Assembly (NCBI GenBank): GCA_943704425.1
Contig: CALSCP010002643.1
Coordinates: 1-64,000, forward strand
Length of the DNA: 64,000 bases
Origin: Ministeria vibrans ATCC 50519
Lineage: Eukaryota > Protista > Filasterea
Reading direction: 5' to 3'
Shown: positions 12,699 to 57,651 of the stretch, piece by piece
How positions within the stretch are numbered: position 1 is the first letter of the stretch
Layout: each line of letters opens with the position of its first letter
Notes under the pieces: model-generated
The model's database searches: none
The model's input: only the letters and a program-made list of their open reading frames with translations
Told to the model about the DNA's origin: nothing
Translations under genes and position numbers: made by a program

Positions 12699-15501
12699 TA
12701 TTATTTTTAATTATTTTTCTTTATTGTACTGTAGCAAGCTCTCCACTGGCATGCTGTTTTCTGAGCCCGAGACACACAAAGGGGTTTCTTGTGACACATG
12801 CCATGTCTCTCCAGTTGTTGGCAGACGCTGGAAGTGCGGCGAATGTGACGATTTCGATTTGTGTCACAGTTGCCTTCATGCGGGACCTCCGTCGTGCGGT
12901 CACGACGTCAACAGCTTTGTCCGTCGACGTCTTCCCACCAGAGAGGAGATTATTCACCATTTGTCTGGATTTGAGAGTGTTTTCAGGCGTTTTAATGAGA
13001 GCGTCTTCTCCCTTCATAAGCTTCTCCGCACTATTGCCGATGACCTTTGCCCGTTGAGCTTGGCGTGGACCTCACGTGTCTCAATGATTGCTAACGGTGT
13101 TGAAGCGGTTTGGCGCGCGTTGCCGTGTACTGTCCGCTATATTGCGGGTGAGCCGGCCGACTGCATTCGAACCAGTCTCGATCCCATTCAAGAGCTGGCA
13201 AACACGCTTGGCTCCATGTCGCAACACTCAATTCTACGCGATGGCACCACACTAGGGGGGCTCCGGACAGCCTATAAATTACGCACTGATTTGGCCAAAG
13301 CATCCTTTTCACTCGGCGTCAAAGTTGCTACCGCCGTTGACATTGTTATCGACGCCAACACTGCTCTGTACGAAATGTATGCAGAGGTGCAAGCAGCAAG
13401 CAGTACTCATGATACGTATGCTTGTGCATGGCTTCCACAGTTGGACATGCTGCGTCGTCGCATAGACCACTTTGAATGGCTGTGCACAGTGGATTTGTTT
13501 CGTCGCTGGCACGACAGCTCGGAGATGCTCCGATTTGACGCGTCGTGGGACACACACCTTCGTGATGCTGTTACCAGTGCAAACGAGCTTCAGCGTGACG
13601 TGGCAACCGAGGAGCGAGCAGGTCAAGAATGCACATGCGAGGGTAATGAAGCAGGCATGGGCACGTGTGTTGCGTGCAAGCTGTCACAAGTGTGTGAGGG
13701 CGCAGCGGATTTCAACGACGACGCCACTCTCTGGTACTTTGTTGGCGAAGCGTTCATTCAAGGGCGAGTGCACGACCGTGTGTTCATGTCGCATCGAGGC
13801 CCCGACACCAAAGCACTGCTGGTGAACGTGGCGCAACGTGAGGGTGCCTCGTCTGCGTGCTTTATTGACATTGTGAATGTGTCGCGTGGTGAGAGCGCGA
13901 CGCGTTTCATTTTTGGAAATCTCGCACGCTCGCGCGATGCAGCTTTTTTGCTATCTCGCACGTTTGCTAGTAGTCCTTACTGTTGCGCGGAGCTTATTCT
14001 CTGGCAAGCGATTGTGGCGAACCGGCCGTCTTCAATCGAGTCGCGTACCTTTGTGGCGGTGGAGCGCGCAATGCCACCACGTCATCGCCAACTGGTCGAG
14101 CAGCTGTGTCGTCACGGCGGCTTGCACATCGCCTATGAATGCGACTCTGCCTTTGAGTTGTGCGAGAGAGCTGTGGCACATGTGCTTGAGCTGTATCCGG
14201 CGCCAGACGCTCCGCCGCTGGGCCGTATTGGCCTGTGGAACGCCAGCACGTCCGGACTGCGAGAGATGCGAACGTGGAACGGCGGCTATGTCAACCTGTA
14301 TGCACTGATGTGCGTAGGCATTCAGGTTGCCAATGGCTTTGCACGGGCCCTTCACGTTCTTCCCGACATTCCTATTTTGGTGGACCCCACACGTGAAGTG
14401 CCTGTGGAAGAAATCGACGCGCTTCTGCAACTGAGCGGACCTCAAGCGGTTGAATTTCAACGTGTTGTGGAGAGCATGGAGCCCACTTTATCGTCTATAC
14501 CGGCGCGCTGGCTGTGCGTTGAAAACGAGCACATTGACGCACGAACGGCGAGGATGCTGCGCGACGGTCTGGTGCAGCGCTGTGAGGCCATCATGATCGC
14601 CGTGACGGATTTGATTGCCGAGCGATTGGTCACCCTGCTGCGCCAACCGGCGGTCGCAGTCGCCGGTGCGGTCTGGATGGGCACGCGCGGCAGCCTTGCA
14701 TTGGTCCTGTCGTTTCTCGCGTGTGCAGCAGAGCGTATCAAGGATGCTTGCTCTACACTGATGGGTCGCAGTGTGCGTATGAATCAGCCGCCAGAGTTTG
14801 CCAATGCCCTTCCGGCGAGCGAACGGATGCTGCTCGTGGACGACATTGAGTTTGATGTGTGTCTGGCCATTGACAACCTTGCCGACTTTCTTCGACTGCT
14901 GCCGGAGACAATGGGCGGTGATGTTGGTGCGGTGGTTCGGGCTCTGGGGGGAGACGAGTGGACGGCCGATCAGTGGTTCATGGCGTGTTTGGGCGTGCAG
15001 GAACAGTATCGCTTGCGTCGTCGATGTTTCATGCGCTCCAACAGCCACGATGATGTCAATGTCACCCGTGTCCTGGGCGCACGTGAGGTTGCACTCCACT
15101 GCGTCGCCACCAACGACCACCTTCACTTTGTCGACCGCTTGTTGTATGCGTTTGCCATGCTGGGCATTCAGAGTCGCACTGTCATGTTCCTGCAGGTCAA
15201 CGATCACACAAAGGTGACTGACGGTGCTGTTCACATTGGTTGGCCTGCCACTAGCGGACTTGAGCGTGGTGATGTTCCTCACTATACTTTCAAGAGTGCG
15301 TCGCAGCTCTTTATTTTTTCGTCGATGAAGGACAAACTTGCGGACATTCTGCAAAAAACGCGCACTGTCACTGGTCTTGGATATGCTGTGCTCACAGAGC
15401 ACCTTGAAAAATTCATGGCATTGCGGCTGGAGCTCAATCTCAACGAGGAGCCAACAGCCGAGTCGTTTGCCTCCTTTGTGCGTGAGCAACAAGATAAATG
15501 A
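12298..15501 (+). CDS. ZZ-type zinc finger + TIR domain protein (~950 aa); two tiny 5' exons plus one 2.77-kb exon
   Basis: ZZ finger HKGVSCDTCHVSPVVGRRWKCGECDDFDLCHSC; TIR RVFMSHRGPDTK...CFID...FLLSRTFASSPYCCAEL (13776-14000); exons 12298/12322-12349, 12615-12624 and 12735-15501 splice in frame. Confidence 0.82.
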
Positions 15502-49941: not shown

Positions 49942-51743
49942 TCAGTTGAACTGGACAGGGTACTTCGTTGCGCAGGCTGACACTTGAGCAAGTGTTGGAT
50001 ACAACATGAAGCAATGGTACGCATATCTGCTTCCTGGATCACTGACAAGGTGAATTTGTCTTGAATCTCGATAGAGCCACCACATGGTGGACGACTGGTC
50101 GGATACAATCGCGTTGCCAATGGACAATATACACTCCCCCGTGTGTCCAATCGAGCAGCCGTACCGTTGTGAGAAAGTGTAGTCAAAAAGCCACTTGGGC
50201 GTATTGTACGCTACGAGTTGATATTCGACAGTTTCTCGTCAGTCGTCCTGCACCTTTTTTTCATCTATGATATACCGTTTGCCTGAACAACACTACTAAA
50301 ATATTGAGTGTAGTCCACCAGCTTCCATTGAAAGTCACTTGTCATCACTCGAAATGCTGGATTGGTGTTAAAAACTAAGCAGAAACATAAAAAAATAATT
50401 ATTAGTAATTATTTGTCCGCACAAAATTCTTGCTGCTGCTCTCTGCATGCAAGTCTCTCGGAATGTCCGCTTCGACTCATGCGGGGGTGAAGCAGCCGCT
50501 TTGGATGGTTAGATTGTCTTGTACAATGAAGCTTTTGCCCTAGGACTTCCAAAAAAACAAACCAAATTTCTTGCTTACTGGGCGATATCGCAGGTGCGAG
50601 TAACAGAGGCGTTGTGTTGGGGACGCTGATAGAACAGGTTGAGGCATTGTGCATGACACGGAAGTCGTCCTTGTGAAGATGTCCAAAAAATTGACCCGCT
50701 ATCGTCGACGAGTATTCGTTTAAGAATCCCAGATAGGTTGCTTCATAGTCAATAACCCAAAGAGCAACAAAAGGATCTCCTTCTTTTCGAAATGGGTCGA
50801 CGATGGGAGGAATGTGTCCCAGAATGTATACGGGAGTTCCCGATTGCGTTGCGGAGCTCAACTGTTCGCGAAGCCATTTCAACTGGAGTCGCGCACGATT
50901 GGAGGTATCAAGAGTCTGGGGTGCGTTGGCCGAAAACAAGTTGGTATTGAGCACAAGTAACAAAAGAGGCTGGGCGTTATCGTGCAAGACGACTGAGACC
51001 TGATAGTAGGCCCCCTCCAAGAAGGTCTCGTTCAACGCGGCCGGATCGAATGTCACTTGTTGCGACCAGGAAAACAACGGCAGCCACATCTGCAAGACGT
51101 GTTCCAGCCAAGGACTTGTTGCATTCGGAGTGACGTAGTCTTTGGGACCGTCATTGTTGCCAAACGCGGGAAAAACCGGGGTGTTTGGAAAGGAAGTTTT
51201 GAGAAGCTGTGCAACGCGGTCAACGCACAACATAACTCGCTCTCGCCCCTCTTCCTCGTCATAGCCCACAGGGAGGTTGTGAGCTGCAGAATCGCCGCTA
51301 AACAATACAAACTGACTGTTGGAGGACACTGACCTGTTGACCATCGCGCGGAGTTGACTGTCCACCAGACGTTCCGGAGCATCGCATCCTGTACGCCCAA
51401 AAGGCGCTGAATAGGGCGCGGGTTTTGATAACGGCGGGTAGTATCGGCATTCCGTTAGTTTAGAGACGGTGGCGTTGAAGAAGAGGTCAAGGTGGGCGTC
51501 GCTGAAATGGACAAAGTGAACTGCGTTGGTTGGCGACAGCGGGAGCGGAGAGGGATTCGATCCCGCGCAAGTTTTCCGATCGTTTGCCAAAATGCCAACA
51601 GCAACCACAAGTGCAACGACAACGCAGCCCGTAATGATAGCAAATGGAGCAGAGGCGTGTCGTTTACAGGGAGCTTTCAGACCTTCATCTGGTCGCTCTT
51701 CGGCAAACCCGCTTCGAAGAAGTGAATACGACTTGTCACTCAT
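49942..51743 (-). CDS. Acid sphingomyelinase-like metallophosphodiesterase (SMPDL3-like), type II membrane anchor, 3 exons
   Basis: FVHFSDAHLD, GCDAPERL, LFSGDSAAH, PAFGNND, YILGHIPP, GQFFGHLHKDDFR; APAISP|IFNTNPAFRV; last exon TPKWLFDYTF...*. Confidence 0.88.
50444..50560 (+). mobile_element. Retroposon copy inside intron 1 of the SMPDL3-like gene (antisense to the gene)
   Basis: Core sequence 50444-50550 plus A tract, lying between the donor at ~50577 and the acceptor at ~50375. Confidence 0.85.
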
Positions 51744-52167
51744 GTTCAACAGGGTCGACAACGAACGAGAGAGACTCCTCGGTGAGCGAAGCAAATTTAT
51801 TGTAATTCCAAGGTTGACGAATGACCATGTCGCTTATTTTTTCGACAGATTTTCGAAATTGCGGTGAACTTCCATATCAACCTTTCTGTCAGCTCGTCAA
51901 CAGAAAAAAAAAAGGAAACACAAAGCATCCACCAAGTAGACAAGTATCGAGTACGTTAAAACCAACCACGATTAGTCAACAGCGGGCTCAAAAAGTCGCA
52001 AAAGCGAGCAGGGGGATAAGTTCGCTTATTTTTGCCACCTCATTTTTCCGACATCGTTTTCGATAAATTCGACCCTTTTTAATTTTTTTAAGTTCACTTC
52101 TTTTCGTTTCCCCTTCACCTCTACCAACTAGTTATACGCACCCTGGTTTTACAAAGTAACACACAAC

Positions 52168-55100
52168 ATGGCGGACAATCACAACAACGACGGCGACACG
52201 AATGATGATATCAACAACAACGACAACGACAACAACAACAACAATAACAATAACAACAACAACAACAACAGCAACAGCGATGGCGACATTGCTGCAACTT
52301 GGGCGCGTGACTACCCGACAGTTGTTGCTCGACTTGCCCGCGACTGCTACACCTCGGCCAGCGCTCTCATTGTCTCCGTGTCTAAGTACCGCACCTCTGG
52401 AAATCCGGCATTAGCGTCTCTTGCCGACCTTTCAAGCGCAGCCGCAAGCGTTTCTCCTCTCGTTCATCTTTACACCTACCTTGGGTTTCGCGTTGCGACA
52501 GTCACCGACAACACAGCGCGCGTCACAACGAAACGCATCTCGGAGGGACTCGCCTTCCTTCAGCAGCGCGCAAACGCGACCACACAGGCGCATGTCACAC
52601 CAATTGTTTCCGAGCGCATCTACTCTTCCAACCGCGACCTGCTTGTCGTGCACATCATGGGCCATGGAATCGGCGAAGGCGACCGATTTGGCATTGTTTT
52701 GTCGAATGCGTCCAACGATCTTGAGAGCGGCTTGACTCGTCTCTCATTTGCGGCGCTTGCGAAAGTTGTGCGTAAGAACGCAAATTGGCAGACGAACCAA
52801 TTCCTCTTTGTCTTGGACATGTGCCAAGCAGGCACGGTACTCTCACCCACACTCTCGCCTGATCTCAACATGCAGGTTGGCGAAGGATACGGCCGCCTCT
52901 CGCTTCCACGAATTATTCCAACTGCGCAAGTTTTGGCATCGAGTTGCCCCAATCAACTTGCCTACTGTCCCGATGGCAGTTTGCCAACGGTCTTTACACA
53001 ACGCTTTGTTGAGGCTCTCAGCGCCCAGGAAGAGCGAAACACAGTTTTTGCCAGGCACGAGGTGTGGATCAACCTCAACATGCTCTGCCACCGAATGTCG
53101 GCGCATCAATCAACGGTAACCTTGCCCCAACGCCCCTGCTCCGGTCACCTACCCGAGTTTTTCAGCCACGACAGCTCTCTCACGGATGCCGCAGAGCGAG
53201 ACACAAAACCCGGCATTATTTTCTTCAACCGAGAGTACGACCGTGACGCGGTTGTCAGCAGCCTTGCTCCCCATGACCCAAAGAGTCTTTCAGTCGTCGC
53301 GCCAAACATAGTGTGCGCCCTGCTGCTCCTGCACGCTGGCACTTGCGACGACGATGCAGTGCGCTCCATGCTCCAGCTGTCGCCCGTCGACTCTCTTTCG
53401 CCCTGGTCGCACGACGGTGTCGACTTCTTCCTTGCTCGCAAAGCCCACGTCATTGTTCTCTTGGCACACATCCAGTGCGAATCGGACATTCAGTTTGCCG
53501 GAATTGCTTCTCGCGTCATCGACGCCTGCCACCCTCACGTCGTCTTTGCTGTCTTTCCCACCGCTCCCCCGCCACCAGCATTCGCTCGCCGCACATCCGA
53601 CGATTCTAATCACGATCAGCAACTCGTTGTCAAGATCATCTCCGAGTTTCCTCGCCAAGGCAACAGCGACCAGTCCCTCCGCACGCACGGGTTGCCCTTG
53701 GCTCTGACAAAGTACATGACAGACGTCTCGTTTACCCCCTCCTTGTCACAGCACCAAATAAACTTGCTGTCGCCCCTGGACGATCCTCCCATTTCGCCGT
53801 CAACCCAACTCAGGCGGCAGCTTGTTGACCTCACATGCGCCCCACGTGTCGCTACCAGGCCACAACACGAGAACGCGCTCGAGAAAGGCAATGCACCCGT
53901 GCTTCAAACCTTTGCGCGCGTTGCTCAATGCTCGTGTGCGCTTCCAACGTGCGATTTGTGTCGCATGGCCCTCCTTGCCGTGTGTGTTCCTCAGCACCCT
54001 CCTCGCACTCGCACTGGGTCTATGCACAAATTACTGGAGAGTGCAAGCGACACTCTGGCACTGGACGACGACACAGCGCACTCGCCTTACACGCGTTTTA
54101 TGGGTGCCCTCGAATTGGTGGGTGTGGCCGCCATCGAAGATGTGCTCTGGCATCCGCAAGCGAAATGCATCTTTCCTTCCAAGCTTATTGCTTTCACTAT
54201 TGTCTTCCGCGACACTACACTTGCCGAGGTGAATGCCTTGCGCGATCGCATTATGGATGAGTTGAGTGCCGTAGACAGGGCCGTCTTCAATTTTGACGCG
54301 ACCACTGTCGTCTTTGTGGGCACACGAATTGGTTCAGTTCGATTTATTGTCCGTGGCACTCCCGGCCTTCTCTGGGTGCTTCAAAGTCGCTTGCACGCCA
54401 CAGACGCTGCTCCCACCTGTACCATCTGCTCTCTCTCGGTCGCCAATATTGTTGTTGCAGACCATGAAGACCGGCAGCTCTTTGAGTCGCTCGGCGCTCC
54501 CATTGCGTCCGACGAGAAACCGACCGCAGATTCGACCGTCGTGTCTGCGACACACGCTGAGCGCAACGAGTCTCAATCGCAAGAGCAACTCGAAACCGTC
54601 ACGCAGCGCGTCCTAAATGTTCTCTCGGAGCGCGTCGTTGCCGCGAGCGAGTTTCTCTCTTGTCACCCTCACATTGTCACAGCGGCTCTCGTGGCTCTCC
54701 TTGCTCTTACTCTTGTTCTCAACGACACTCTGGCCCGTGCCGTGTTCACCAGCATGTCCTTTATTGTCAATCACTTGGCGCACGCTCAGCTGCGCACCAA
54801 TCACACCGCCGCTGCTCCCCTGCTCGCGCTTCTTGGAGGGTTGTTCTTTTTTTGGAACGTGTGGCGCTATCGCACGAAAGTGCCCTTGTCTCTCCCTGTC
54901 AACACTATTTTTGTGTTGTCGTCGTTTCTGTGGGCCGGCGACTACTGTGTGACGTGGGTTAAATGTCTTACGCTGCTCTTTTTCTTTGTCAGCTTCTTTG
55001 ACTTGTACAAGAAAAAGATTGCTCTGTCGCGTGACACGCTCCCTCCCGTCCTCTATGCCGTGGGCTTCCAAATGCGTGGACTCACCCCCCTATTCCACTC

Positions 55101-55938
55101 TCTCGCATCCAACCTCAACGTGACTGGGCACTGGGCAATTGCAGTGGATCTTCATCGCCCCCAGGCGGAGTATGCAATGATTCACGCCACAGGTGAGATC
55201 AGTCGTGACATGCGTGTCAAGGTCGAAAAAAAACCGCTGAGCTACTTTGCGGAGCGCATTGACTCGACCAAAGCAAGGGACCCCCAAAAGCCCATTATGG
55301 CGTGCACCGCGTCACTTGTTGGCCTTGCGGACTCAGTTCCTGCCCTCCAGCGCTTTGTCAACGAGTACGACAGCAAACACGCGTTTCTCAGCGAGTCGCG
55401 CACCTGCCAGGACTTTTGCGAGTATTTTCTCTACCGCGTCTCACCCAGCAACAACACCAAATCGTACCTCATGGGCTTTTTGCGACTCAAAGCCTACCAC
55501 ATGATTCCCATTTTTGTGCTCTTCCTATGCCTCTTTGGCTTGCTCGGCGACTTCGATCTGTGGTTTGTGTTCTATCTCATTTTTGACTACATGGAGTACA
55601 CGCGCTACCGTGAAGAGGAGAAGAAGAAGCCGCCCAAAGTCCACGCCATCGGCTTGGCCATCACCATTACCATGCTCATCATCCTCTACAGCACGCTTGG
55701 CTTCATCCTCTACTATGACTTTGCCATGACTGCCGTCTTCTTGCTGCTGGCCGTCTTCATGACCGTCCACGAGTATCTCACCATTCGTCCCCTCGGGATT
55801 CCCCGCTCCATCGACGCGTCTCTCCTTCAGCTCCACGACACAATTGTTCACAGCAGCATGAAGAGCGACAGCAACCTCAACATCGAGTCTCGTTGCGACA
55901 TTTATCTTCCAAAGCGACTCAAAGAGAAAACCAGCTGA
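52168..55938 (+). CDS. Caspase-like (peptidase C14) + multi-pass membrane + permuted papain-like (PPPDE/LRAT-type) protein, 1256 aa, intronless
   Basis: ALIVSVSKY...LGFRV...DLLVVHIMGHG (His 52663)...FLFVLDMCQAG (Cys 52822)...TVFTQRFVEAL; several hydrophobic helices; GHWAIAV (His 55129)...SRTCQDFC (Cys 55405); further TM helices. Confidence 0.8.
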   Translation: MADNHNNDGDTNDDINNNDNDNNNNNNNNNNNNNSNSDGDIAATWARDYPTVVARLARDCYTSASALIVSVSKYRTSGNPALASLADLSSAAASVSPLVHLYTYLGFRVATVTDNTARVTTKRISEGLAFLQQRANATTQAHVTPIVSERIYSSNRDLLVVHIMGHGIGEGDRFGIVLSNASNDLESGLTRLSFAALAKVVRKNANWQTNQFLFVLDMCQAGTVLSPTLSPDLNMQVGEGYGRLSLPRIIPTAQVLASSCPNQLAYCPDGSLPTVFTQRFVEALSAQEERNTVFARHEVWINLNMLCHRMSAHQSTVTLPQRPCSGHLPEFFSHDSSLTDAAERDTKPGIIFFNREYDRDAVVSSLAPHDPKSLSVVAPNIVCALLLLHAGTCDDDAVRSMLQLSPVDSLSPWSHDGVDFFLARKAHVIVLLAHIQCESDIQFAGIASRVIDACHPHVVFAVFPTAPPPPAFARRTSDDSNHDQQLVVKIISEFPRQGNSDQSLRTHGLPLALTKYMTDVSFTPSLSQHQINLLSPLDDPPISPSTQLRRQLVDLTCAPRVATRPQHENALEKGNAPVLQTFARVAQCSCALPTCDLCRMALLAVCVPQHPPRTRTGSMHKLLESASDTLALDDDTAHSPYTRFMGALELVGVAAIEDVLWHPQAKCIFPSKLIAFTIVFRDTTLAEVNALRDRIMDELSAVDRAVFNFDATTVVFVGTRIGSVRFIVRGTPGLLWVLQSRLHATDAAPTCTICSLSVANIVVADHEDRQLFESLGAPIASDEKPTADSTVVSATHAERNESQSQEQLETVTQRVLNVLSERVVAASEFLSCHPHIVTAALVALLALTLVLNDTLARAVFTSMSFIVNHLAHAQLRTNHTAAAPLLALLGGLFFFWNVWRYRTKVPLSLPVNTIFVLSSFLWAGDYCVTWVKCLTLLFFFVSFFDLYKKKIALSRDTLPPVLYAVGFQMRGLTPLFHSLASNLNVTGHWAIAVDLHRPQAEYAMIHATGEISRDMRVKVEKKPLSYFAERIDSTKARDPQKPIMACTASLVGLADSVPALQRFVNEYDSKHAFLSESRTCQDFCEYFLYRVSPSNNTKSYLMGFLRLKAYHMIPIFVLFLCLFGLLGDFDLWFVFYLIFDYMEYTRYREEEKKKPPKVHAIGLAITITMLIILYSTLGFILYYDFAMTAVFLLLAVFMTVHEYLTIRPLGIPRSIDASLLQLHDTIVHSSMKSDSNLNIESRCDIYLPKRLKEKTS

Positions 55939-56380
55939 GATTTTATATAATATTTTTCAGTTATTTTTATACAATACAATAATAATAAATTTATTATTAT
56001 TATTGTTTGGACGTGATAAATGCATAAGTAATTTAAAATTATAACATTGATATTTAGAAAACAACCATAAAAACAATAAAATCTTCTTGGGGCTACCCTA
56101 TGGCAGAAGCATTATATTACACTCACACACTCACTATTACTCTTCATACACACTCACTATTACACTCTTCATTGTAGTATAATTATGTTGAGTAAAAATT
56201 TCACTTCATATTCTATTAATAAATGGGTTGTATTCTTCTTCTCCTTCGAATAAATCTTACTGGATAGCAATTGCACTTGTGCTTTTGTTGTAGATCTGGT
56301 GAGTGATGGTGTCTTTGCTCACAATTCATAAATCGGTTGAATAATATTATTCTTTTATTCCTCTTATTAAATTGTTCACC

Positions 56381-57651
56381 ATGGCCGACAAATTTGCAAT
56401 GCACAGCCAACTGGTGCACCTCCAGTCCAAATACGTGGGAACTGGCCATGCAGACACGAGTCGATTGTACGAAACCTCAAAAAAACGCTCTTTGTGCTCT
56501 TCCCGTTCCTTCCATGCCAAGCCACACGCCCCCACTCCGTCCCCGCCTCTCTTACAACACCACCACCCCACTTTTAATCTCTCGTTTTCCCTTCCTTTCT
56601 CACAATCGTCGGTTCGATTTTTTTTCTTCACTTGTAGCGAATGGATGCTGAACCAGCGAAGAGACAGCTATGCGTCGTACATTGGCCACCACAACCTCAT
56701 TGGATACATGGCTATTGTCGAGAACGAGCCCATTGCCAAGATGCGCTTTCGCTTTCAAAAGGTGCACTCACTTCCTTCTCAATCTCACTTTTCATTCTCT
56801 CTCACTTGGCTCTCTCACTTGGTTTCCTCCCTCTCTCTCACTTGGTTTCCTCTCTCTGTCTCACTTGGTTTCATTCTCTCTCCTCTCTCTGTCTCACTTG
56901 GTTTCCTCCCTCTGTCTCACTTTGTTTCCTCCCTCTGTCTCACTTGGTTTCCTCTCTCTGTCTCACTTGGTTTCATTCTCTCTCCTCTCTCTGTCTCACT
57001 TGGTTTCCTCCCTCTGTCTCACTTTNNNNNNNNTCTCACTTTGTTTCCTCCCTCTGTCTCACTTGGTTTCCTCTCTCTGTCTCACTTGGTTTCATTCTCT
57101 CTCCTCTCTCTGTCTCACTTGGTTTCCTCCCTCTGTCTCACTTGGTTTCCTCTCTCTGTCTCACTTGGTTTCATTCTCTCTCCTCTCTCTGTCTCACTTT
57201 GTTTCCTCCCTCTGTCTCACTTGGTTTCCTCTCTCTGTCTCACTTGGTTTCATTCTCTCTCCTCTCTCTGTCTCACTTTGTTTCCTCCCTCTGTCTCACT
57301 TGGTTTCCTCTCTCTGTCTCACTTGGTTTCATTCTCTCTCCTCTCTCTGTCTCACTTGGTTTCCTCCCTCTGTCTCACTTGGTTTCCTCTCTCTGTCTCA
57401 CTTGGTTTAATTCTCTCTCACTTGGTTTCATTCGGCTTGATTCTCTCTCACTTTGTTTCTCCTCTCTTTCACTTGGCTTTATTCTCTCTCTCACTTGGCT
57501 TTATTCTCTTTCTCACTTTGTGTCCTTCTCAATCATTTTGCTCCGATCACTTTGTTTTCTCGCTCTAACTCTCTCTGTCTCTCATTAGGCAATGCTCGCA
57601 CCCTGTGGTCCCCACCCGCCCAAGCCTCGTTGGGACACCAATGTTGAATAG
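56381..57651 (+). CDS. SF3B5: Splicing factor 3B subunit 5 (SF3b10), 3 exons
   Basis: SQLVHLQSKYVGTGHADT; EWMLNQRRDSYASYIGH; AMLAPCGPHPPKP. Confidence 0.95.
56790..57530. repeat. Intronic pyrimidine-rich minisatellite (TCTCACTTGGTTTCCTCCCTCTG-type 23/33-bp units)
   Basis: Higher-order tandem array in SF3B5 intron 2; includes a small N gap. Confidence 0.92.

Follow-up and report, generated by a model that had tools for sequence, protein, structure and literature searches.

Genomic setting and coding quality

Within the window analysed (a stretch of 64 000 nucleotides from Ministeria vibrans), the forward strand carries an intact ORF of 1256 codons and a stop at 52168–55938, with an ATG start and zero internal stops. 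Its N-terminal part is a predicted caspase-fold protease of bacterial type and its C-terminal part a predicted polytopic membrane protein that encloses a soluble domain. All the motifs quoted by the first-pass annotation, which had been made from the DNA letters alone, were found in the translation. The features of the locus are given below (all on the + strand).

52168..55938, +: complete single-exon ORF (ORF list, codon-position GC, GC windows, RSCU)
52212..52276, +: (CAA)n trinucleotide array encoding an N-terminal poly-Asn tract (period 3, 21.7 copies)
52342..53238, +: predicted caspase-fold protease domain of bacterial (orthocaspase / EACC1-associated) type, aa ~59–357 (NCBIfam NF047832)
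52663..52665, +: codon of the predicted catalytic His166 (the GHG histidine; invariant, aligned to metacaspase-4); motif HIMGHG at aa 162–167 of the ORF translation
52822..52824, +: codon of the predicted catalytic Cys219 (DMCQAG; invariant, aligned to metacaspase-4); motif LDMCQAG at aa 216–222 of the ORF translation
53239..54651, +: orphan middle region, aa 358–828, with native codon usage and no relatives; includes motif VGTRIGSVRF (aa 717–726 of the ORF translation; 54316–54345, +)
54652..55005, +: first hydrophobic block, four predicted membrane helices, aa ~835–946 (hydropathy; the P0001 and P0002 segments correspond)
55006..55485, +: soluble His/His/Cys domain, candidate LRAT/PLAAT-like thiol enzyme, aa ~947–1106 (invariant columns); motifs GHWAIAV (aa 987–993) and TCQDFC (aa 1079–1084) of the ORF translation
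55486..55788, +: second hydrophobic block, four predicted membrane helices, aa ~1107–1207 (hydropathy; DFD and DYxE(Y/F)TR conserved)
55789..55935, +: C-terminal tail, aa 1208–1256, not conserved (no counterpart in P0001 or P0002)

GC3 ranged from 0.56 to 0.79 and the codon-position GC was even through all twelve 100-codon blocks of the ORF. No 90-nt GC window within it fell below 42%, except over the poly-Asn (CAA)n tract, against 14–38% in the flanks, and only two donor-like sites were found, both weak. RSCU correlated well with that of six neighbouring ORFs (r = 0.85), the three parts of the ORF taken separately giving r values of 0.65, 0.78 and 0.84. Because of this even codon-position GC, the lack of any GC dip and the agreement in RSCU with its neighbours, the entire 52168–55938 frame is considered coding and native. 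Horizontal transfer of the whole gene was rejected in view of its native codon usage, while the absence of a GC dip and the uniform coding signal led us to reject both a retained intron and a frame made up of two genes. The first-pass annotation had also described the gene as intronless in an intron-rich genome; the single open frame stands, but it is only mildly unusual since other open exons in the same window reach 812–925 aa. The neighbours of the gene are an SMPDL3-like gene and a repeat array. The ORFs at 56372–57588 were rejected as genes, being artefacts of a CT-rich minisatellite.

The caspase-like N-terminal domain and its family

The N-terminal domain was matched by the NCBIfam model NF047832 (E 1e-12, 48 bits), as were all 11 family members tested from this genome. 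On this score it is a relative of the NF047832 subfamily rather than a member, since 48 bits lies far under the subfamily cut-off of 140 bits, and no EACC1-like gene was seen among the neighbours of the ORF. The Pfam model PF00656 (Peptidase_C14) gave no match to the ORF itself; its paralogues (33–41% identity, E down to 7.6e-22) scored 22–40 bits against a PF00656 cut-off of 21.4, several of them passing the gathering score. Cyanobacterial domains fitted the family profile across positions 8–223 of 227 (E 1e-12). Bacterial and archaeal genomes scanned with the caspase alignment returned pattern matches only and no relatives.

C14 peptidases typically have a histidine of the Gly-His-Gly type and a cysteine in D/Q-x-C-x-x-G, each following a β-strand, and the ORF has both residues. 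His166 aligns with the SGHG histidine of Arabidopsis metacaspase-4 (PDB 6w8s) and Cys219 with its DSCHSG cysteine (an Ala in 6w8r), and both residues are invariant among the 11 aligned caspase-family members. The NF047832 match, the metacaspase-4 alignment and the paralogues above the PF00656 cut-off support the assignment of aa ~59–357 to the caspase fold (C14 type), with its His/Cys dyad intact, and hence its prediction as a protease. The first-pass annotation had arrived at the same dyad and had placed it with prokaryotic rather than animal caspases, in agreement with the NF047832 match and the full-length cyanobacterial matches.

At least 38 paralogues of the caspase-like domain were found across the genome (E 1e-22 to 1e-7), in open frames that extend from ~270 aa to over 1000 aa. 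The genome holds dozens of bacterial-type caspase-like domains with varied partners; two of the copies end long open frames that also hold a Roc-like GTPase region. The copy in the ORF has diverged further than any other family member (32–41% identity, with several insertions), and the conserved C-terminal GRIW...GDILFFRDG ending of the family is not recognisable in it. No other caspase-like copy of the genome is fused to a polytopic membrane protein that bears a conserved His/His/Cys site.

The middle region

No match to aa 358–828 was obtained in the Pfam, NCBIfam, PADLOC or PDB searches, nor was any paralogue found in the genome or any match in a HMMER search of 1.84 billion representative proteins. 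A ferredoxin/SEA-like region had been suggested around VGTRIGSVRF; the suggestion found no support, the SEA domain (PF01390) having no Pfam match at E <= 10 on aa 657–878 and no homologue being found.

The C-terminal membrane module

Kyte-Doolittle hydropathy placed four segments before the soluble insert (~835–858, 882–900, 905–923 and 926–946) and four after it (~1107–1127, 1128–1140, 1158–1180 and 1183–1205), refining the earlier estimate of about four membrane helices, a soluble domain with His before Cys, and three or four further helices. This module (aa ~829–1256) is present as a single copy in the genome, and the HMMER search of 1.84 billion representative proteins detected only two relatives: P0001, a 323-aa metatranscriptome fragment (E 6e-20), and P0002, a 419-aa MMETSP transcript (E 1.6e-6). 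Both are homologous to aa ~925–1216, the best-conserved stretch spanning the second hydrophobic block, and both share with the ORF the layout of four membrane helices, insert and four membrane helices, together with the same invariant residues.

P0001 is truncated at the 5' end, whereas for P0002 an in-frame TGA ahead of the ATG indicates a complete protein; P0002 has neither the caspase domain nor the long linker. Since this complete 419-aa protein lacks the caspase domain, comparison with it identifies the 52168–55938 gene as a fusion and shows the membrane module standing alone in one further marine protist at least.

Further searches added little. A word-index search with the whole protein was blank, probably swamped by poly-Asn words, and so was one with aa 820–1256, for which the length window of the search excludes short relatives; a word search with the three-member module alignment retrieved P0002 only. 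Viral and metagenome contigs scanned with the module alignment yielded pattern matches but no relatives. Nothing relevant came from the PDB when it was searched by sequence with the whole protein, with the insert or with the module alignment, and PADLOC found nothing on the ORF.

The soluble domain within the membrane module

The residues invariant in the insert across the ORF, P0001 and P0002 are H977, HWA988–990, D994, H1006 and SRTCQDFC1077–1084. The His...His...Cys order of LRAT/PLAAT enzymes (H-REV107, HRASLS; PF04970) recurs here as H988, H1006 and C1080 with T/N-C-Q-D-F, a likeness at the level of motif only. PLAAT enzymes have a Cys113-His23-His35 triad, an NCEHFV motif and a C-terminal TM helix, in a fold of a four-stranded sheet and three helices (PMC4624172). 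As in LRAT/PLAAT, His precedes Cys in the insert, the second His would lie one strand on, the putative nucleophile forms part of an N/T-C-x-(H/D)-F motif and the presumed catalytic helix is followed by a membrane helix, a hydrophobic helix beginning ~27 residues past C1080. H988 and C1080 are 92 residues apart, compared with 90 in PLAAT3. Unlike PLAAT, which is tail-anchored, the insert lies between two four-helix membrane blocks, and it differs from LRAT/PLAAT in the second invariant Cys of its CQDFC motif, in the extra invariant H977 and in having no significant sequence or profile similarity to them.

This last point was consistent across methods. Pfam gave no match to the insert at E <= 10, and its LRAT model (PF04970) none in the ORF, P0001 or P0002; a search of the whole genome with that model left the 52168–55938 locus without a match. 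Against a comparison set of 31 cyanobacterial PF04970 domains, neither hhalign (E 0.41) nor hmmsearch --max with filters off (<=2.8 bits) gave a significant result for the insert. The PPPDE (Peptidase_C97, PF05903) model had no match on the ORF; over the whole genome it had a single match, a two-exon PPPDE gene on contig C2497, and hhalign of the insert against exon 2 of that gene, which holds the catalytic Cys motif, gave E 0.28. One match of a viral contig to the back-translated HWA...NCEHF pattern was discarded as chance, not being an ORF.

The Atlas language-model neighbours of the insert included PPPDE, IcsB_M, CLN5, TseH and LRAT, the named families being mostly papain-like, with scores (0.77–0.90) in the range that the tool itself grades as leads only. 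PPPDE/DeSI (Peptidase_C97) and CLN5, thiol enzymes of the permuted papain fold which scored 0.80–0.88 among the named neighbours, are His-first as the insert is, although the insert has no HMM match to them.

Structure prediction with AF2 from three sequences gave unreliable models for both aa 905–1256 (pLDDT 42) and aa 950–1105 (pLDDT 41). In the low-confidence model of aa 905–1256, H988 and H1006 fall on consecutive strands and C1080 opens a helix, the order of secondary structure (low pLDDT) being four strands and then helices, as in PLAAT. Foldseek, run on the model of aa 950–1105, returned noise with no meaningful match, and both models are too poor to judge the fold.

On the permuted papain fold claimed in the first-pass annotation the evidence is divided: the invariant His/His/Cys residues, the PLAAT-like spacing and the Atlas neighbours agree with it, but neither the PF04970 and PF05903 models nor hhalign and hmmsearch gave a significant match. 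On its motifs we regard a permuted-papain (LRAT/PLAAT-like) fold as plausible for the insert. The three invariant His, the Asp and the CxxxC pair would be equally suited to a metal site, and the main alternative follows from this, namely that the module is a membrane protein with a metal or redox site (a transporter, sensor or anchor) and not a papain/NlpC-P60 enzyme, its role being to anchor the caspase-like protease at one particular membrane. It would account for every formal LRAT/PPPDE homology and fold test not being significant, and also for conservation being strongest in the membrane helices (DFD and DYxEYTR motifs), a peak which suggests that the membrane part is itself functional. 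Residue order and spacing, the HWA strand, the N/T-C-x-D-F helix start and the nearby TM helix nevertheless suit PLAAT/LRAT, as do the mostly papain-like named Atlas neighbours, and we consider the metal or redox alternative somewhat unlikely.

Interpretation of the fused gene

The reading that we prefer, tentatively and with a little less than even confidence, is that of a resident single-exon gene in which a caspase-like protease, an orphan linker and a rare LRAT/PLAAT-like membrane module are combined. The first part would be a cytosolic bacterial-type caspase-fold protease with a His166/Cys219 dyad, a divergent member of a lineage-expanded family; the second an orphan stretch of ~470 residues; and the third a full copy of the rare membrane protein, with four helices, a soluble domain of ~150 residues and four more helices. 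Alternatively, the fusion could be an accident, a promiscuous and rapidly duplicating caspase-like exon having inserted ahead of an unrelated gene for a membrane protein, so that the two ends act independently or the protease is decaying. A domain so mobile in this genome (at least 38 copies, in frames of ~270 to over 1000 aa), the divergence of this particular copy with its unrecognisable GRIW...GDILFFRDG ending, and a middle region without any relatives would all fit such an origin, which we nonetheless hold to be quite improbable: the catalytic His and Cys and the invariant residues around them are all kept, and the fully open 3.77-kb frame with native codon usage even in its three parts argues for maintained expression as one protein. 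That the caspase part and the membrane part are made as separate products, through splicing or from an internal promoter, as the stand-alone module P0002 might suggest, is very improbable with 1256 codons free of stops, no GC dip, two weak donor-like sites only and a coding signal that is even across the part junctions.

Under the preferred reading, both the caspase domain and the insert should face the cytosol, because four helices precede the insert and the loops after helices 2 and 4 are Lys/Arg-rich. The insert would belong to the thiol acyl-enzymes of permuted NlpC/P60 (LRAT/PLAAT-like) type: C1080, at a helix start, would be the nucleophile and H988 the base, while H1006 (or D994) would support H988. 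Kept at the membrane surface, it may transfer or remove the acyl chains of membrane lipids, and the tethered protease may control it, or be positioned by it, through cleavage of the linker in cis or in trans. Such a logic would be that of protease-licensed effectors in bacterial defence and of caspase-gasdermin systems. The fold and lipid chemistry of the insert, the topology, the cleavage of the linker and a role in death or defence are inferences. The full scheme, a self-contained protease-gated effector on membrane lipids in which linker cleavage licenses new membrane-embedded permuted NlpC/P60 thiol lipases, we put forward as speculative and, taken as a whole, unlikely.

The closest parallels to the protease end are the bacterial orthocaspases and NF047832 proteins, with which the ORF shares the GHG histidine and the DxCxxG cysteine (HMM match E 1e-12). 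As in the NTPase-linked conflict systems of NF047832, members of the caspase family in this genome are joined to GTPase-type regions. In contrast to those bacterial systems, the host is a eukaryote, there is no EACC1 partner, and the caspase domain of the ORF is N-terminal and in one chain with a polytopic membrane protein. Bacterial caspase-like proteases of this kind cleave a membrane-permeabilising partner (bioRxiv 10.1101/2025.11.14.688446).

Significance

The combination of a caspase domain with an eight-helix His/His/Cys membrane protein, predicted here from the translated ORF, was not seen elsewhere among the 1.84 billion representative proteins, in line with the first-pass annotation, which had not recognised the architecture. 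Caspase-like proteases that unleash membrane-damaging partners occur in animals (gasdermins) and in bacteria (gasdermins, EACC1 and Pepco); what such systems looked like in unicellular eukaryotes is, to our knowledge, little documented. If the lipase reading is false, the module would still represent a new and extremely rare membrane protein family with clear residues to mutate. If an LRAT-like thiol lipase is indeed under protease control, it would constitute a new branch, embedded in the membrane, of the NlpC/P60 superfamily. The gene would then offer a single-chain model in which membrane attack gated by a protease could be tested directly in a protist, and it would be the one-chain equivalent, in a eukaryote, of the protease-effector modules of bacterial defence and of the caspase-gasdermin scheme.

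Reading frame and neighbourhood

The whole studied ORF is coding. GC1, GC2 and GC3 are even across all twelve of its 100-codon blocks, GC is at least 42% in every 90-nt window except at a (CAA)n array (flanks fall to 14–38%), and its synonymous codon usage correlates with that of six neighbouring ORFs at r = 0.85 (caspase part, 0.65; middle, 0.78; C-terminal part, 0.84). The uniform GC, the lack of a GC dip and the native codon usage therefore indicate a resident gene that is all read in one frame. The motifs listed in the first-pass annotation are real (HIMGHG, aa 162–167; LDMCQAG, 216–222; VGTRIGSVRF, 717–726; GHWAIAV, 987–993; TCQDFC, 1079–1084). That annotation also drew attention to an intronless ORF in an intron-rich genome; the single open frame stands, but it is only mildly unusual, because the window contains other single exons of 812–925 aa.

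Features of the window
12724–15501, + strand: 925-aa ORF with a ZZ zinc finger (E 1e-10)
50409–51794, − strand: SMPDL3-like (acid-sphingomyelinase-like) metallophosphoesterase ORF (PDB 5kar, SMPDL3B, E 9e-35)
52168–55938, + strand: studied ORF, ATG start, 1256 codons
52212–52276: (CAA)n array, 21.7 copies, encoding an N-terminal poly-Asn tract
56810–57518: CT-rich minisatellite downstream of the studied gene, 23-nt unit, higher-order periods 79, 102 and 198, containing an N run (assembly gap)

The SMPDL3-like phosphodiesterase gene lies head-to-head with the studied gene, with 373 bp between the starts; the two may have a common promoter and may both be lipid-related. In the 925-aa ORF a TIR_2 match was also seen, but below threshold, at 20.9 bits where the cut-off is 28 (E 5e-4). 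Overlapping ORFs of 246–398 aa at 56372–57588 were rejected as artefacts of the CT-rich minisatellite with its assembly gap. The poly-Asn tract swamped the first word-index protein search.

A bacterial-type caspase-like domain

The N-terminal domain is predicted to be a bacterial-type caspase-fold protease domain, and this part of the protein belongs to a known kind. Pfam returned no caspase-domain match in the studied ORF itself. A search of the 29.7-Mb assembly, however, showed that aa ~59–311 has at least 38 paralogues there (E 7.6e-22 to 1.7e-7; 28–42% identity), several of which exceed the gathering score of Pfam Peptidase_C14 (22–40 bits; cut-off 21.4 bits). NCBIfam NF047832 ('caspase, EACC1-associated type') matched all 11 family members tested and the studied ORF directly (E 1e-12), the latter at 48 bits, far below the subfamily cut-off of 140 bits, which places the domain outside this bacterial group, as a relative. 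His166 (GHG) and Cys219 (DxCxxG) do not vary across eleven aligned copies, and the profile of this alignment places them on SGHG and DSCHSG of Arabidopsis metacaspase-4 (PDB 6w8s); in the companion entry 6w8r, Ala occupies the aligned Cys position. Cyanobacterial domains matched the caspase profile over positions 8–223 of 227 (E about 1e-12) in 19 of the 201 genomes searched. The Pfam scores of the paralogues, the NF047832 match, the dyad alignment and the cyanobacterial matches together support the earlier reading of a prokaryotic-style C14 domain with an intact dyad.

The studied copy is the most divergent of the family. It is N-terminal in its protein, whereas the domain is C-terminal in the open frame of most paralogues, including those read through; in two paralogues the long region ahead of it gives a weak Roc GTPase signal.

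Caspase-domain paralogues
Contig C2822, L009:2042–5176, + strand: C-terminal end of a 1044-aa open frame
Contig C985, L011:4562–7252, − strand: C-terminal end of an 896-aa open frame

The upstream parts of these two frames resemble each other, and the weak Roc GTPase match of the C985 frame has an E value of 0.0017.

An orphan linker and a membrane module with two relatives

Searches of Pfam, NCBIfam, PADLOC and PDB, of 1.84 billion representative proteins (HMMER) and, for paralogues, of the window's own genome gave no match to aa 358–828. A SEA-like reading of GSVRF within this region found no support: the SEA model gave no match, and the likeness to the SEA autocleavage turn is by eye only. 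Beyond it, a hydropathy scan revealed four hydrophobic segments (aa 835–946), about 160 polar residues and four more segments (aa 1107–1205), in agreement with the proposed layout of about four transmembrane helices, a soluble domain and three or four further helices.

The exhaustive HMMER search of aa 320–1256 against the same 1.84 billion proteins returned two proteins only, namely P0001, a 323-aa metatranscriptome fragment covering aa 925–1216 (E 6e-20; 1078-nt contig cut at its 5′ end), and P0002, a 419-aa protein from an MMETSP transcript marked complete (E 1.6e-6). P0002 has the same layout of hydrophobic helices, polar insert and four further helices, and an in-frame TGA twelve bases upstream of its ATG shows that its frame lacks a caspase domain. 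The window's genome has one copy of the module, and no other member turned up in viral or metagenome contigs. The module thus represents an undescribed family of which three members are known, and its occurrence alone in the complete P0002 identifies the studied gene, at the level of predicted architecture, as a caspase-like domain and orphan linker fused onto a complete P0002-like protein. The contig carrying P0002 also bears, on the opposite strand, a 372-aa open frame (L015:1307–2425, − strand) that runs off the contig end, which is odd for a transcript contig; this frame has no Pfam match.

Nature of the polar insert

Columns invariant in all three members are H977, H988-W-A, D994, H1006, S-R-T-C-Q-D-F-C (1077–1084), Y1089, T1097 and Y1100, a set typical of an active site. 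PLAAT/HRASLS enzymes have a Cys113-His23-His35 triad whose Cys belongs to a conserved NCEHFV motif, a fold of a four-stranded sheet and three helices, and a C-terminal membrane helix (PMC4624172). The His-to-Cys spacing is 90 residues in PLAAT3 and 92 in the insert (H988–C1080), with 85 in P0001 and, with insertions, 127 in P0002; NCEHFV compares with T/N-C-Q-D-F, and a membrane helix starts ~27 residues past the Cys. Two AlphaFold runs gave unreliable models (pLDDT 42 and 41). In the first, H988 opens one strand, H1006 lies in the next, and four strands are followed by a helix that begins with C1080; Foldseek on the second model (pLDDT 41) gave noise. Named language-model neighbours, rated as leads only at these scores, were PPPDE (0.88), IcsB_M (0.86), CLN5 (0.85), TseH (0.85) and DUF3750 (0.84) for aa 955–1105, and PPPDE (0.80) and LRAT (0.77) for a larger piece. 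Of these, PPPDE, CLN5, IcsB, TseH and LRAT belong to the papain-like thiol enzymes; DUF3750 is uncertain.

The permuted papain fold proposed earlier thus has PLAAT-like His/His/Cys order and spacing in its favour, but model and profile tests gave it no significant support. Even at E 10, Pfam LRAT and PPPDE matched neither the studied ORF nor P0001 nor P0002, and a whole-genome scan with these models found nothing at the studied locus. An hhalign comparison of the insert alignment with 31 genuine cyanobacterial LRAT (PF04970) domains (73–98 bits each) gave E 0.41. With filters off, the LRAT-domain HMM aligned FNNCQDFCVYA of P0002 to the family's fnnCehfatWc in the right place, at only 2.8 bits. 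Exon 2 alone of the genome's only PPPDE gene found, which carries the catalytic Cys motif, gave E 0.28 against the insert.

PPPDE gene, unrelated to the studied locus
Contig C2497:81508–82034 (L016, L017), − strand: PPPDE (Peptidase_C97) gene, two exons, 71.5 and 50.8 bits

The main rival is that the invariant residues form a metal or redox site, for which three His, an Asp and a CxxxC are available, set against the PLAAT-like order and spacing. We place a papain-like thiol enzyme slightly above an even chance.

Topology, possible mechanism and novelty

The caspase-like domain and the insert should both face the cytosol, as inferred from the four helices before the insert, the Lys/Arg-rich loops (RYRTK after helix 2; YKKK after helix 4) and the lack of a signal peptide ahead of the 830-residue N-terminal part. 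As a papain-like enzyme, the insert would act on acyl chains of membrane lipids via a Cys1080 thioester, like PLAAT/LRAT enzymes. Cleavage of the long linker by the tethered protease, either in cis or following clustering, could free or activate the membrane enzyme. Another possibility is that the membrane module only positions the protease.

The databases searched held no counterpart of the caspase and membrane-module combination, an architecture that the first-pass annotation had not recognised either. The whole joins a protease to a putative membrane effector; it is not filed as categorically new, because the nature of the insert, its decisive part, is unproven. Bacterial caspase-like proteases offer an established case of protease-then-effector logic: they cleave EACC1, leading to membrane pores (bioRxiv 10.1101/2025.11.14.688446). 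PLAAT1 is reported to promote the breakdown of mitochondria, endoplasmic reticulum and lysosomes (PMC9510373). That the studied gene may serve in cell death or defence is an idea drawn from the partners of the caspase-like family in this genome.
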